Below the pieces are notes generated by a model. That model did not search any database. It worked only from the letters and a program-made list of their open reading frames with translations, and was not told the origin of the DNA. 64,000 nt of DNA from IMG/VR virus record IMGVR_UViG_3300032315_001715, positions 62,001 to 126,000 of that record, one strand, 5' to 3'. A program made the position numbers and the translations under genes. This document shows positions 51,299 through 56,834 of the stretch, piece after piece; positions within the stretch are counted from its first letter, which is position 1; the number at the start of each line of letters is the position of its first letter.

Positions 51299-52201
51299 TC
51301 ACGAAGACTTTGAAATGTTCATTGACAGATATTGCCATACAAACGTTGCAGCAGCTATCGCGGTGATTTGCGAGTGATCGTATGCCGGTGCCACCTCGAC
51401 ACAATCCATGCCAATCCAATTGATATCCTGTAACTCCTCGATGACCTCCATCAACCACATCGACGTTAGTCCGCCGATCTCTGGAGTACCAGTCCCAGGT
51501 GCATATGCAGGATCAAGGCAGTCAATGTCTAGGCTGAGATAGCACGGGCGATCGCCAACCTTTGCACGTATCAGTTCGGCCATGAATCTCGGTGAATGTC
51601 TCATGGCCTTTCGGGCAGTCACCGTGGTACCACCGCGGCATTCGAGGAATGCACGGGATATCTCATCAGCAGGACTGCGGATACCTATGCTGATGGTATG
51701 ATGCGGATCAATGAGGTTGTCCTCAATCGCACGGAACATCCATGTCCCATGCCCGGTGGGCATGCCAAAATGATCCTGCCAGGTATCACAATGTGCATCA
51801 AAATGCACAACGGCTATTTCTGCCGAGGTGTACGACCGTTCTAATGCTGCAAGTATTGGATGTGTTATGCCATGATGGCCGCCAAGGGTCACAACGTGCT
51901 TTCCGGCAAAGGTGCGCATGCTGCGCCGTATTTCGCTCATGGCATCGATATTATATCCGCTAGGGATGGCCATGTCCCCAACATCCCCGACATGATCGAT
52001 CAGGGATACCGGATACCGCTCGTTTACACCGTCGGTTAGCATCATGCTAGCATCACGGATGGAGTTTGGTCCCATCCGTGATCCACTGCGGAACGTGGTT
52101 GCGCAATCGACCGGGGCACCAATGACGACAAATTTCTGATCGGTATAGTTTTTTATGCCGCTGAAGTTGCGTGTGCTACTATATTGGAATGGTAGATGCA
52201 T
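51299..52201 (-). CDS. speB: agmatinase (ureohydrolase family)
   Basis: GSRMGP, LGGHH, HFDAHCD, SLDIDCLDP, PGTGTP, EVAP. Confidence 0.9.
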   Translation of the reverse strand: MHLPFQYSSTRNFSGIKNYTDQKFVVIGAPVDCATTFRSGSRMGPNSIRDASMMLTDGVNERYPVSLIDHVGDVGDMAIPSGYNIDAMSEIRRSMRTFAGKHVVTLGGHHGITHPILAALERSYTSAEIAVVHFDAHCDTWQDHFGMPTGHGTWMFRAIEDNLIDPHHTISIGIRSPADEISRAFLECRGGTTVTARKAMRHSPRFMAELIRAKVGDRPCYLSLDIDCLDPAYAPGTGTPEIGGLTSMWLMEVIEELQDINWIGMDCVEVAPAYDHSQITAIAAATFVWQYLSMNISKSS

Positions 52202-53803: not shown

Positions 53804-54508
53804 TCACAATTCTGAATGCTGTTTATGTACGAGCCTACCATCGACGGTTCGATCTATCCATACGCTATGGGGCGGAGGAGTTTTACCAGCATGTTGGTAA
53901 TGCCAAGCCCATCTAGAATGGTAGTTTACCGTTGCGGTAGGAACGTGGTGTTTCGCCATGTTGCTTTGGATCACGGATGCCCAAAATTGCCTGTCGCTCC
54001 ATAAGCGCATGGCTGATTCCGTGATCCAGTATGTTAACAAATGCAACGCCGGCTTGCCAATAAACATGCAATTGGTATCACAAAAATCTCGGCCATTGCT
54101 TTCGACATCATCAACATATAGGTGATCCCCCGATTCAGTGCAGATGTTTCGAGTTGCTGTTACGATTGCCGCACCGGTCGATCGCATCGTGTCAACCATG
54201 GTCGATACGTGATCAGTGCAAAATGTGTTATCAGCATCAAGGAACGCAACCGCATCGTATCCGCGGCTAAACGCCGAAATAGCACCAATTGCCCTTGGAG
54301 TTGCACCAGCATCAGCATGTTGTACTGGTAATATCATGTGTTCAATGTTGGCAAATATTTTAAGACAGGGGTGTGGTAATCCGTCAGCTATAAACATATG
54401 CGTAACATCGCCATAATCCTGAGATGCCACCGAATCGTGGCATCTCTTTAAGATTTCATATTTCTCATTGTGATAGGGTGTTACAACCGCTACACGAGTT
54501 GTGGTCAA
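53804..54508 (-). CDS. glycosyltransferase family 2
   Basis: VVTPY, SVASQ, ADG, GATPR, FLDADN. Confidence 0.85.
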   Translation of the reverse strand: MTTTRVAVVTPYHNEKYEILKRCHDSVASQDYGDVTHMFIADGLPHPCLKIFANIEHMILPVQHADAGATPRAIGAISAFSRGYDAVAFLDADNTFCTDHVSTMVDTMRSTGAAIVTATRNICTESGDHLYVDDVESNGRDFCDTNCMFIGKPALHLLTYWITESAMRLWSDRQFWASVIQSNMAKHHVPTATVNYHSRWAWHYQHAGKTPPPHSVWIDRTVDGRLVHKQHSEL

Positions 54509-54939
54509 AGGCTAAGCCCCTTGAAACTATTTTCGTCGACGTCCATCTTAGCATCACCGATCTTATAACTTGAGATCTCCTGGCGATAGTAATCTGGAAT
54601 TTGATTCTTCAAAATGCAGAACATGTTATAAGTTCTCCCATCCATGAAAGGGGTTATGTCTATTAACCTGTTTTCCCAGGTTTGAATTACGCTATGCAAG
54701 ATAGCTATATGACCATCACGGTTAATATCTCTCAGAAGGTAATATCCAATAATACGAGTGCCACCATACCAATTAGTATATTCGATGGTATTATTGTGGC
54801 AGTCCCACTCCTTACAAAATGGTTTTGATATGATTGGAACCATTCCAATCCAGCGAGCGTCAAGAGATTTTGCAAAATCAATAAGGTCTTTATCAAGCTC
54901 CGGTATGATGAACATTTTCTGATCTAATCTTCCATCCAA
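54505..54939 (-). CDS. hypothetical protein fused to a duplicated NrdB C-terminus
   Basis: CHNN..HSV..IDITP domain; ends ISSYKIGDAKMDVDENSFKGLSL, identical to NrdB. Confidence 0.7.
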   Translation of the reverse strand: MDGRLDQKMFIIPELDKDLIDFAKSLDARWIGMVPIISKPFCKEWDCHNNTIEYTNWYGGTRIIGYYLLRDINRDGHIAILHSVIQTWENRLIDITPFMDGRTYNMFCILKNQIPDYYRQEISSYKIGDAKMDVDENSFKGLSL

Positions 54940-55660
54940 CTGCAGGACCTGACCTCGGACGATATTCAGGATGATACAACATCTTATGCATGGTTGCTAG
55001 GGCAAGTCCAAGTGATCTGCAAAATTCATCTAGATTACCAATTGTAATATGGTCCATACCAGTTGGGTCTGTCAAAATCCATCTATAGCTTTTCTTATTG
55101 GCCGCACCTTTGTATTTTGAGTTTGCAGCACCGATCTTAGATTTCCTTTCATCCGGACATGACCCCAAAATTCTTCCCTTACCTTTGGCAGAAATTTTCT
55201 CTCTTGTTTCTTTGCTATGGATTTTGGGGCCATATCCTCCCCTAGATTTTTGTAGCATTGATCGAAAAGCACGCTGTTGGTCTGCCTTTTCTTTTGATCC
55301 ATATATTTCTTCGTAAGATTTGCCTTTGTGATTTGGCGGTCTTGAATCTTCGCAAATGTTAGTAAGTATTCCGCCTTTGTTGTAGCCCTTGCGTCCATAT
55401 TTTTTGATCAGAGAAGCTTCGAGCTCATATGCTATGTCTTCATCAATTATATTTTCTGCAACATAAATTATCTTGGGCTCAAGGCCTGCTGCTCTTATAG
55501 CAGTGATTTTGTTTTCTTTGTGCATGTTACGGGTTTCTGGTATTTCCCACAAATGAGTGATGGCTCTACGACCCGTTCCTTTGCCCACATAAAAAGGCTG
55601 ATCGTTTTTTCTTGGATCAGCCAAAATATAAACATAATAAGTTATCTCTGTCTCCTGCAC
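54893..55660 (-). mobile_element. GIY-YIG (LEM-3-like) homing endonuclease with NUMOD3 repeats
   Basis: YYVYILADPR..PFYVGKG.G.R, LE..LI.KYGR, LTN, HSKETREKIS. Confidence 0.85.
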
Positions 55661-55691
55661 TTTGATAAACCTATTTAGTGCAGGAGACAGA
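55647..55691. promoter_or_regulatory. 15-bp inverted repeat enclosing a late promoter and covering the endonuclease start codon
   Basis: TCTGTCTCCTGCACT/AGTGCAGGAGACAGA with TAAATA at the loop. Confidence 0.75.
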
Positions 55692-55700
55692 AATCATTGT

Positions 55701-56834
55701 TTATAAACTTAGGCCCTTGAAACTATTCTCGTCGACGTCCATCTTAGCGTCACCGATCTTATACGAGGAAATTTGGACTTGCTGAGGTGCCACCTGCACT
55801 TCCTTGCCGGAAATCCATTTGTTGGTCCACGGTAGTGGATTAGCCTTTCCCTTGTAGGGGCTATCGAGGCCAATGCTAGTCATGCGAGAATGTGCGATGT
55901 GTTCGACATAATCCTTGAGCAATGCTGCATTAAGACCAATCATCGATCCATCCTTGAACAGATAATCGGCCCAGGCCTTTTCTTGATCAATGGCAGAAAT
56001 AAACATCTTGGTAACCTCATCCCTGCACTCGATTTCGATTTCAACAAAATCAGGATCGTCCTTCGGCAACAGCTTTATCAATGTCTGCGTGCTGCCGAGG
56101 TGTAGATTCTCGTCACGGCAGATAAATTTGATGATCTTGGCATTGCCTTCCATCTTCTTCAATTCGGCAAATGCCCAAGAGCACGCAAAGCTAACGTAAA
56201 ATCGAATACCTTCAAGTGCATTAACTGAATTAAGACACAGCCACAATCTCTTCTTTAGTTCCCTGCGACGTATGTCGATGGTCTGGCCATTGACGCTGTG
56301 CGAACCTTCTCCTAGTAGATGATACCACTGGGTGTATTCGATCAAGCTGTCATAATACTTGGTGATATCCCTGGCGCAGTCGACGATCTGTTCAATATCG
56401 AGCATGGTATCAAATACCTTGCCGGGATCCGGATAGACGTTGCGGATGATGTGCGTGTAGCTCTTGGAGTGGATGGTCTCGGAAAATGCCCAGGTCTGTA
56501 TCCAGGTTTCTAGCTCTGGTAGTGAGCAAATGGACAGGAACGCGAGATTTGGCGCACGCCCTTGCACGCTGTCGAGGATTATCTGTCGCTTGAGGTTGGA
56601 CGTAAAGATGTGCTGTTCATGCGGACTCAGTGCGCGAAAATCCTTCTGGTCCTTGGTTACATCAACTTCCTGTGGTCTCCAGAAGAAACTTAGCTGGTTC
56701 TCGGTAAGACGATCAAACACGCGGTATTTGATGTTGTCATATCTAGCAACAGTTGTGGTGCCAGATTGGTCCAGGAATGCCCGGACCTTGGTGCTGTTGG
56801 CTCTGTTGCCGCTGTCTAGTGTATGGAATGTCAT
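55701..56834 (-). CDS. nrdB: ribonucleotide reductase class Ia beta subunit
   Basis: FFWRPQEVD, LDSVQGR, ETIHSKSY, LEGIRFYVSF, RDENLH. Confidence 0.97.
   Translation of the reverse strand: MTFHTLDSGNRANSTKVRAFLDQSGTTTVARYDNIKYRVFDRLTENQLSFFWRPQEVDVTKDQKDFRALSPHEQHIFTSNLKRQIILDSVQGRAPNLAFLSICSLPELETWIQTWAFSETIHSKSYTHIIRNVYPDPGKVFDTMLDIEQIVDCARDITKYYDSLIEYTQWYHLLGEGSHSVNGQTIDIRRRELKKRLWLCLNSVNALEGIRFYVSFACSWAFAELKKMEGNAKIIKFICRDENLHLGSTQTLIKLLPKDDPDFVEIEIECRDEVTKMFISAIDQEKAWADYLFKDGSMIGLNAALLKDYVEHIAHSRMTSIGLDSPYKGKANPLPWTNKWISGKEVQVAPQQVQISSYKIGDAKMDVDENSFKGLSL

Follow-up and report, generated by a model that had tools for sequence, protein, structure and literature searches.

The stretch of DNA analysed here, referred to below as the window (64,000 nucleotides), is part of a 452.8-kb virus record. 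It carries the genes of a class Ia ribonucleotide reductase (RNR), all of which lie on the minus strand. Directly behind nrdB, the gene for the small subunit, stand a hairpin, a gene for a GIY-YIG endonuclease, a short open reading frame (ORF) called ORF144, and a second copy of the nrdB 3' end. Together these features very probably form a mobile cassette built around a free-standing GIY-YIG homing endonuclease, a cassette that occupies the same place behind nrdB in other large phages and in T4-like phages. Table 1 lists the features of the locus. The spacer between nrdB and the endonuclease gene is 40 nt long.

Table 1. Features of the RNR locus, in window coordinates.
Feature	Position	Strand	Assignment or remark
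nrdA	59874-57556	(-)	head of the RNR gene row
HNH homing endonuclease gene	57552-56857	(-)	phrog_655, E 1.7e-55; PF01844 weak; between nrdA and nrdB
nrdB, class Ia RNR small subunit	56834-55701	(-)	Pfam PF00268, E 4.5e-45
Recoded site CAG CAA GTC CAA (Q-Q-V-Q)	55773-55784	(-)	within nrdB
Upstream copy of the duplicated nrdB end (ISSY...SL, stop)	55701-55772	(-)	probably cassette-borne
Hairpin	55641-55697	(-)	5' arm 55677-55697, loop 55662-55676, 3' arm 55641-55661
GIY-YIG endonuclease gene, 255 codons from GTG	55660-54893	(-)	PF22945, phrog_314
ORF144	54939 (or ATG 54915, the likely start) to 54505	(-)	domain part 54939-54577
Probable relic of the native nrdB 3' end	54505-54582	(-)	in frame with ORF144
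Family-2 glycosyltransferase gene	54508-53804	(-)	PF00535; outside the transferred block (identity to L084 collapses beyond about 54540)
Glutaredoxin gene	53790-53530	(-)	after the glycosyltransferase gene

The locus was compared with about 200 related loci (L numbers denote loci and P numbers proteins). Locus counts are counts of contigs, many of them related to one another, and the nrdB tree described below is the better measure of independence. A BLAST search of the region against phage records returned distant nrdB matches only. Contigs from three DNA runs contained the cassette-bearing form and a relative at about 87% identity, with no cassette-less variant among them, and no RNA run was found to contain the region.

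The tail of the window NrdB reads APQQVQISSY. The first-pass annotation of this DNA had stated, without database searches, that the protein commonly reads APQE(T/V)EISSY at this place, and the comparison bears this out. Among the 80 nearest viral nrdB loci, 79 read APQE(T/V/S)E(I/L)(S/T)(S/T)Y, and most of them continue straight into the glutaredoxin gene. Cassette-less relatives thus have two glutamates (QE.E, where the point stands for any residue) and not the glutamines of QQVQI, and profile searches found neither cassette gene in any of the 79. The sole exception, L005, reads APQQTQISSY and has the cassette. Its ORF of 382 codons joins an ORF144-like domain to a GIY-YIG enzyme with 51% identity to that of the window, and closes with FKGFSL and a stop, a scrap of an nrdB end. 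Carriers found with the endonuclease or ORF144 as query have the cassette directly after nrdB in every case, and every one of their nrdB genes has the two glutamines (QQ.Q).

The reverse search gives the same picture. The DNA pattern for VAPQQ.Q(I/V) has at least 117 matches in viral contigs, and 110 of those listed are nrdB tails. Behind 101 of these lie both the endonuclease and the ORF144 domain. Three more (L147, L151, L194) have the ORF144 domain alone in more than 2.6 kb of downstream sequence, six are too short to judge, and none has neither gene. Among the matches listed, the ORF144 domain is therefore present behind all 104 QQ.Q nrdB genes with enough downstream sequence, and the endonuclease behind 101 of them. 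In bacterial and archaeal genomes no nrdB tail was found among the at least 120 matches listed, which is a weak test. It is the passenger domain, and not the tail fused to it, that tracks the QQ.Q allele, even where the endonuclease has been lost.

At the level of codons, the cassette-less relatives have CAR GAR NNN GAR (Q-E-x-E), and the first base of both glutamate codons is G in 79 of 79. In carriers both codons are changed at that base from G to C, turning GAR into CAR and glutamate into glutamine. These first bases cannot be changed silently, which fits the established behaviour of homing endonucleases, enzymes that read constrained codon positions of their targets (reviewed for I-TevI in PMC2988022). 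QQ.Q may be the allele that the endonuclease cannot cut.

Copies of the nrdB 3' end flank the endonuclease gene, and it is the upstream one that completes nrdB. As had been noticed at first reading, the last 23 codons and stop of nrdB recur at 54505-54576 in frame with ORF144. The two 72-nt copies share 59 bases. All 13 differences are synonymous or lie inside the stop codon, and the 23 residues are identical, with the NrdB C-terminus reading ...VAPQQVQISSYKIGDAKMDVDENSFKGLSL and that of ORF144 ...YYRQEISSYKIGDAKMDVDENSFKGLSL. The core of the repeat is 56 nt at 93% (54512-54567 against 55708-55763). It is the sole long repeat in the 4.1-kb region and has two copies genome-wide.

Several relics support the view that the downstream copy is the native nrdB end and that the upstream copy came with the cassette. 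In the window the relic opens with CAG GAG, continues with ATC TCA AGT TAT and closes with TGA. As expected of a native nrdB end, this stop and the start of the following gene overlap. The same junction with the family-2 glycosyltransferase gene occurs in L096. This overlap also suggests that native nrdB was translationally coupled to the glycosyltransferase gene. In L085 the cassette is followed by CTCAAGAAACAGAAATTAC..., which encodes PQETEITSY..., is out of frame and is about 72% identical to the functional end; its glutamate codons are kept (CTCAAGAAACAGAAAT). The relic of L087 keeps ETEITSY, and that of L089 keeps EGEITSY, in frame at the C-terminal end of the endonuclease. Since these relics are of the QE.E type, it is the relic that has the glutamate codons and the working nrdB that has the glutamine codons. 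The earlier proposal that the cassette inserted at these codons and supplied a replacement end is supported by three observations: the glutamates of the relics, the glutamines of all carriers, and a transferred block that is much more similar between two phages than its flank.

The two copies do not evolve independently. In L084 they are 100% identical over 65 nt. Within genomes 59, 69, 50 and 63 of the 72 positions are identical, and between genomes 41-58. The copies in one genome are more alike than their counterparts in different genomes, and gene conversion therefore homogenises them. Separate signatures persist only in the last 6-9 nt, where nrdB copies end in AGTTTATAA (window, L084, L096) and relic copies in AGCCTN followed by the stop. 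Silent-only differences were considered as proof of selection on the relic. This was rejected, as the same pattern is expected from two once-functional nrdB ends and gene conversion.

These observations bear on a further proposal of the first-pass annotation, that the NrdB tail is the functional part of the passenger protein and lets it dock on NrdA, so that it could bind or inhibit RNR. In favour of this, the tail is read in frame, with a protein sequence identical to that of the NrdB tail in the window and L084. Across the window's subfamily at least seven lineages have retained the frame, even where domain identity is down to about 60% (P0002-P0007), and only silent differences separate the window copies. 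Small-subunit C-terminal peptides are moreover known competitors for the RNR large subunit. However, the silent differences are expected if both copies stem from functional nrdB genes, the copies are homogenised within a genome, and each homing event would recreate the fusion. Gene conversion, together with regeneration of the relic from each recipient's gene end, accounts for the silent differences and the kept frame with no need for a tail function. The tail is also not conserved. It is absent or replaced in L098/P0008, L147, P0017 and L091, out of frame in L085-88, reduced to FKGFSL in L005, and carried by the endonuclease instead in L089. An RNR inhibitor would in any case make little sense in a phage whose own RNR operon is under purifying selection. 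Because the tail is so variable, docking on NrdA is not a conserved property of the passenger, and the proposal is very unlikely to be right.

The endonuclease ORF itself is intact. Its product matches PF22945 above the cut-off (E 5.5e-8) and phrog_314, annotated as homing endonuclease (E 1.2e-9); the match to PF01541 (18.7 bits) is below the cut-off. The GIY-YIG motifs of the window enzyme are intact (YVY...YVGKG...R...E...N), and homologues lie directly after nrdB in more than 100 loci. One carrier clade has a different GIY-YIG subtype, and coverage by hidden Markov models is thus no measure of degenerate endonucleases. The possibilities of a group I intron and of an intein were considered for this site and rejected, since nrdB runs uninterrupted to a stop codon of its own and a separate ORF encodes the endonuclease.

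Presence and absence of the cassette are polymorphic at one fixed site. The cassette is missing from 79 nrdB loci and present in more than 100, always directly after nrdB. On a tree of 132 unique NrdB sequences, built with the last 32 residues left out, the QQ and EE states switch 16-17 times, and at least nine of these switches are forced by well-supported branches. Shuffled labels give a mean of 44. The cassette has thus spread horizontally, and repeatedly.

Comparison of the window with L084 shows the transferred block directly. Identity is 53-73% at first, rises to about 93% from about 55836/55716 to about 54547, and then collapses. From this profile the block runs from the recoded nrdB end, with the upstream tail copy, through the hairpin and the two cassette genes into the start of the relic. 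Synonymous divergence (dS) is 0.18 for the endonuclease and 0.26 for the ORF144 domain, against 1.2 for the last 94 nrdB codons. The ratio of non-synonymous to synonymous divergence (omega) is 0.28, 0.20 and 0.12, respectively. Both cassette genes and the nrdB of carriers are under purifying selection.

The cassette exists in two gene orders. The endonuclease may come first, as in the window, or the ORF144 domain may come first, fused or separate (L005, L085-L089 and many of L100-L216). In both orders QE.E-like codons stand just before the endonuclease methionine. Carriers in which the domain is fused to the N-terminus of the enzyme are called type B below.

The start of the endonuclease gene lies in a 15-bp perfect inverted repeat, as first reported, with arms at 55677-55691 and 55647-55661 (TCTGTCTCCTGCACT / AGTGCAGGAGACAGA). 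The arms are 15 nt apart and extend to 28-nt arms at 82%. The ORF opens with GTG CAG GAG ACA GAG ATA ACT TAT TAT, which encodes (V/M)QETEITYY. As RNA, the hairpin folds with -36.8 kcal/mol (z = -6.45), and none of 200 shuffled sequences folds as well. Its 3' arm holds the GTG, a Shine-Dalgarno-like AGGAG, and an ATA codon that is ATG in L084.

The hairpin is conserved. Homologous hairpins are found in L084, L094, L098 and L185, and in three lineages the z scores are -6.45, -9.40 and -4.10, with compensatory changes in the arms. In L094 the stem is perfect over 18 bp, the loop contains TATAAATA, and the 3' arm reads CAAGAGGTAGAAATC-ATG (QEVEI-M). L098 follows the same plan with CAGGAGGCTGAA-ATG, and the 3' arm of L185 reads GCAAGAGGCTCAA-ATG. 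A distant clade (L101, L108, L125, L179, L206) has unrelated arms, TTTAAGACTGAA and TTCAGTCTTAAAATG, yet again TATAAATA in the loop and an ATG buried in the stem. In all, TATAAATA was found in the loop of L094, L098 and these five loci.

The first-pass annotation had offered two functions for the inverted repeat, a hairpin that blocks translation or an operator. The first is favoured by the retention of the structure with compensatory changes, even where the arms are unrelated, and by TATAAATA in the loops of relatives. It corresponds to the arrangement of T4 endonuclease genes, in which folding of read-through mRNA hides the ribosome-binding site, whereas late transcripts begin within the hairpin and can be translated (PMC2988022). 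The pattern of sequence change thus supports a T4-style hairpin in which the ribosome-binding site of the endonuclease is sequestered. The second function would make the inverted repeat a DNA operator, at which the endonuclease binds without cutting and represses its own promoter. The 3' arm of the window's clade, CARGAGNNNGARAT (QE.EI), does resemble the presumed homing site and flanks a promoter-like loop, and the operator of I-TevI resembles its homing site and overlaps a late promoter (PMC2988022). However, only in the window's clade does the 3' arm resemble the nrdB target. In the distant clade the arms are unlike the nrdB site, and hairpin, loop TATAAATA and buried ATG are all kept; it is therefore the RNA structure that is conserved. 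The target-like words can also be explained otherwise. Type-B carriers have QE.E-like codons before the endonuclease methionine as well (QESES-M in L005, KETE-M in L089), and such words are read here as a probable relic of the native left half-site, which doubles as the Shine-Dalgarno sequence (AGGAG). Action as an operator is accordingly quite improbable.

The following account would explain these findings. The cassette consists, in this order, of a replacement nrdB 3' end, in which the glutamate codons of the beta-tail motif QExE(I/L)SSY have become glutamine codons; a hairpin that buries a ribosome-binding site and a start codon; a GIY-YIG endonuclease of I-TevI/Seg-like build; and the ORF144 domain. 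The endonuclease would cut a cassette-less nrdB at or near the QExE codons, and repair would copy the cassette from a co-infecting donor. The gene end of the recipient would be pushed downstream as a relic, which in the window is read in frame onto ORF144, and the QQ.Q allele would be the uncuttable form. Read-through mRNA from nrdB would fold the hairpin and hold back the endonuclease, as in T4, and in the relatives a late promoter in the loop would give transcripts that lack the 5' arm. In the window the late promoter and the ATG start both appear to have decayed, and the ORF is intact; the enzyme is probably only weakly expressed there. The anatomy of the cassette, its presence or absence among relatives, its link with QQ.Q among the loci listed, its horizontal spread and the conservation of its hairpin are observed in the sequences; the cleavage site, the resistance of the recoded allele and the timing of expression are put forward here from sequence comparison.

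Several points weigh against this account. The loop of the window hairpin reads ACTAAATA (55672-55679) and not TATAAATA, and TATAAATA is not enriched in the 64-kb window (1 found, 1.5 expected). The endonuclease start is GTG or ATA (55643-55645), where L084 has ATG, and a late switch of the T4 type may not be operating in this genome. The cut site could also lie at a distance from the QE.E codons, as it does for several free-standing endonucleases of T4, in which case the glutamine codons could be hitch-hiking, co-converted markers and not the determinant of resistance. The occurrence of two gene orders is a further point. Finally, resistance by way of a non-synonymous change at a residue that is reported to be essential is costly, and the account gives no reason for this cost.

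The first changed codon aligns with E350 of the E. coli beta subunit and the second with E352. Mutants of E. coli beta with A, D or Q in place of E350 are reportedly inactive. In two studies, E350 is described as conserved and essential, its substitution as disrupting radical transfer, and its contacts in a 2.6-Å complex as bonds to alpha K154, S647 and bridging waters (PMC9248007, PMC11482829). At these contacts no compensating changes were found in NrdA, and the equivalents of K154 and S647 are kept in carriers and non-carriers alike. Either glutamine is tolerated in the enzymes of carriers, or something restores their function.

ORF144 is a candidate for such a factor, and its properties are as follows. 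ORF144 and seven homologues match no Pfam, PHROG or NCBIfam family, and a profile search of PDB sequences gave nothing below E 0.3. The domain family is large, with 1301 cluster representatives at E up to 1e-3. Among the matches listed, the domains that go with QQ.Q form 43 clusters at 90% identity and 7 at 50%. In 69 unique nrdB-linked copies Cys47, His82 and Asp94 are invariant (window numbering), as are Asn50, Asp100 and Arg102. In the wider family the His and the Asp are invariant and the Cys is nearly so. An AlphaFold2 (AF2) model from 25 sequences has a predicted local distance difference test score (pLDDT) of 94.9 and an alpha/beta fold of helix, strand, helix and four strands. In domain numbering (window numbering minus 8), helix 39-50 has Cys39 at its N-terminus, strand 68-78 holds His74, and strand 84-86 holds Asp86, placements that were read from the secondary-structure assignment. 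The domain is acidic to neutral.

Fold searches were run with this model and with one of pLDDT 74. Against the PDB (Foldseek, VIA-align), Swiss-Prot models and viral models they found no characterised relative, and against AlphaFold database (AFDB) clusters and the Atlas they found uncharacterised proteins only. VIA-align Z scores were at most 3.8. They were 2.9-3.6 to TglA, PeiW, NAT and LapG, with equal scores to glyoxalase-type modules. Transglut_core in the Atlas comparison had a TM score of 0.38-0.46. A predicted complex of the domain with the last 42 NrdB residues scored 0.01 and is uninformative either way.

Four arrangements of the domain are found: it may be fused in front of the endonuclease, stand as a gene of its own either before or after it, or occur alone. 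It is intact directly after nrdB where the endonuclease is absent (L147, L151, L194), a 64-amino-acid relic (L187) or truncated (L203). In P0041 (L217:3861-5477), directly after nrdB, it is fused to DUF723 zinc ribbons and a Vsr-like domain (assigned by eye). The nrdB of L217 reads PQQTEVQSY (QQTE), so that the E350 equivalent alone is changed. L219:4001-4576 (P0046) encodes a degenerate relative whose nuclease part and invariant Pro are lost, and the nrdB there reads AQESELQSY (QESE). The bacterial family member P0092 (175 amino acids; L222:2778-4528) lies directly after a phage-type integrase gene, so that members of the wider family also occur away from nrdB.

The 56-72-nt direct repeats that flank the cassette should readily delete it and leave QQ.Q behind, yet none of the 104 testable loci listed is in this state. 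This suggests that QQ.Q depends on ORF144, and some dependence of the allele on the domain is a possibility that may be entertained tentatively. As an addition to the homing account and not a replacement for it, ORF144 could be a functional partner of the recoded NrdB that restores RNR. Since E350 of E. coli is described as essential for radical transfer, glutamine in its place would on this reading cripple the enzyme. Its contact residues in NrdA are kept in cassette-plus phages. The domain accompanies 104 of 104 testable QQ.Q genes listed and none of the 79 QE.E genes, remains intact where the nuclease has gone or decayed, and recurs beside a different nuclease, again after nrdB, where the tail reads QQTE. 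It is unlike a DNA binder in charge, and its omega of 0.20 and its invariant residues also speak for such a role. Against this, the association is inseparable from the shared descent of the cassette, glutamine might be tolerated in the phage enzymes, the domain of L219 stands beside an nrdB that reads QESE, and the wider family, including bacterial proteins of 170-230 amino acids, occurs in other contexts such as beside an integrase. A partner role is thus possible but doubtful.

The most specific form of this role would be that of a protein-glutamine deamidase. ORF144 would be a Cys-His-Asp enzyme that converts Q350 and Q352 to glutamate after translation, undoing the damage of the immunity mutation, and after fixation of QQ.Q it could not easily be lost. 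Deamidation of protein glutamine to glutamate is known from papain-like Cys-His-Asp enzymes (OspI, PMC3636029), and in ORF144 the Cys stands at a helix N-terminus with the His and Asp on the next strands. However, the fold matches are not significant, transglutaminase-like and papain-like hits being mixed with glyoxalase-type modules, and the distant member P0083 has His for Cys, which would fit a metal site equally well. Deamidation is therefore unlikely.

Alternatively, ORF144 may be an accessory of the homing machinery, such as a second nuclease subunit or a regulator, with no link to NrdB and with glutamine tolerated. The domain always lies within the transferred block, forms the N-terminal part of a fusion with the GIY-YIG enzyme in many type-B lineages (L005, L085-89 and dozens of the listed QQ.Q loci), and is fused to a second type of nuclease in P0041. 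However, it survives intact after loss of the nuclease, is in many cases encoded as a protein of its own, and is acidic. An accessory role would also not account for why cassette-free QQ.Q alleles never appear among the loci listed, and it too can be proposed only tentatively.

Homing endonucleases are usually harmless to their carrier, because the changes in the target are silent or tolerated or because the element interrupts the target. The present cassette is instead tied, in all 104 testable loci listed, to the loss of two invariant glutamates of the RNR beta tail, one of them the equivalent of E350. If glutamine is tolerated, these phage enzymes can do without that glutamate, which would matter for how class Ia RNR works. 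If the second gene restores function, the locus holds a new kind of partnership between a selfish element and a host gene, and the host would have become dependent on the passenger gene after decay of the nuclease. If deamidation is what restores it, the cassette would immunise itself through its DNA while doing no harm to the protein, by way of an enzyme that "edits" the protein after translation. In each case the locus is direct evidence of repeated horizontal spread, and a large uncharacterised domain family (about 1300 cluster representatives) gains its first functional lead.

Other mobile elements are found at the same operon. The HNH gene between nrdA and nrdB stands in the position of mobE in T4. 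It is unrelated to the cassette and independent of it, absent from most relatives, and present as a fragment in L087. In the closest cassette-less relative (L001:2219-5932), whose NrdB is 76% identical to that of the window, nrdA is fractured. Its first ORF ends in the N-terminal part of an intein (...NLC/LTGDS..., the slash marking the junction), an HNH gene follows, and a second ORF begins with the C-terminal part (...VVHN/CAEITLPT). This is the split-intein arrangement of PMC2677866. L098:1-2939 has an nrdA with an intein by Pfam. In L086 and L088 nrdA (21-554 and 2008-2379) has a 1.45-kb insert near residue 630, and the nrdA of L089 (138-680 and 1421-2344) carries an insert whose flanking matches overlap at residues 457-478. 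For mobile elements the RNR operon is a hotspot, and several independent ones have settled there.

Two neighbouring features vary among relatives. The family-2 glycosyltransferase gene stands between nrdB and glutaredoxin in some of them only (window 53804-54508; L096:5402-6112; L151). At 51299-52201 (-) the window has an arginase/agmatinase-like ORF of 300 amino acids, assigned by eye, and L096 has a gene with the Pfam family Arginase in the same neighbourhood. The window ORF may be an auxiliary metabolic gene.

Parts of this arrangement can be found in several known systems. A literature search for the whole combination in phage RNR genes, incomplete in its coverage, found nothing. A close parallel is offered by the mobile endonuclease ORFs (mORFs) of fungal mitochondria, which carry a foreign C-terminal portion of a gene (Allomyces macrogynus atp6; Glomus atp6, atp9, cox2 and nad3; PMC3630166). 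These also place an endonuclease gene near the 3' end of a conserved gene, bring a replacement C-terminal piece with which the host gene is completed, displace the native C-terminus downstream, and leave copies whose differences are largely silent. The nrdB cassette is a clean phage case of this "replacement C-terminus" mode of insertion. Unlike mORFs, it has a phage as host, and its endonuclease is separate, with its own hairpin control, and not in phase with the host gene. Its replacement end is non-synonymous at two invariant residues, a second conserved gene always comes along, and the two copies of the end evolve in concert.

The seg and mob genes of T4-like phages, among them mobE between nrdA and nrdB (PMC2988022, PMC2790892), resemble the cassette in other respects. 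They share a GIY-YIG enzyme of I-TevI-like length placed between conserved genes of a cluster for nucleotide metabolism, polymorphic presence and absence, co-transfer of flanking markers (intronless homing), and RNR genes as the target. As reviewed in these sources, however, they do not duplicate and recode the end of the target gene, whereas the presumed resistant allele of the cassette is a fixed pair of amino acids in every carrier. In I-TevI, I-TevII, I-TevIII, segB and Aeh1 mobE (PMC2988022) a hairpin buries the Shine-Dalgarno sequence and the start, as it would do here, and relatives of the window have TATAAATA in the loop. The window differs from the T4 hairpins in its degraded loop (ACTAAATA), its start other than ATG, and the 3' arm of its clade, which also reads like the nrdB target.

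Disruption of an RNR gene by a free-standing endonuclease is also known from Aeromonas phage Aeh1, where mobE splits nrdA (PMC3045599), and from genes fractured at split inteins (PMC2677866). There a compensating device carried along with the element preserves enzyme function, and the cassette may be likened to this. Unlike the nrdA of Aeh1, nrdB stays whole, and any compensation would concern two residues and not the assembly of fragments. Papain-like and transglutaminase-like deamidases such as OspI (PMC3636029) share with ORF144 an invariant Cys at a helix N-terminus and a His and Asp on the next strands, and their chemistry, Gln to Glu, is what would undo the recoding. However, ORF144 has no significant sequence or fold match to them (Z at most 3.8). 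Three things set the cassette apart from known systems: every carrier has a fixed pair of changes at invariant residues, a second gene is obligatory, and the duplicated ends evolve in concert.

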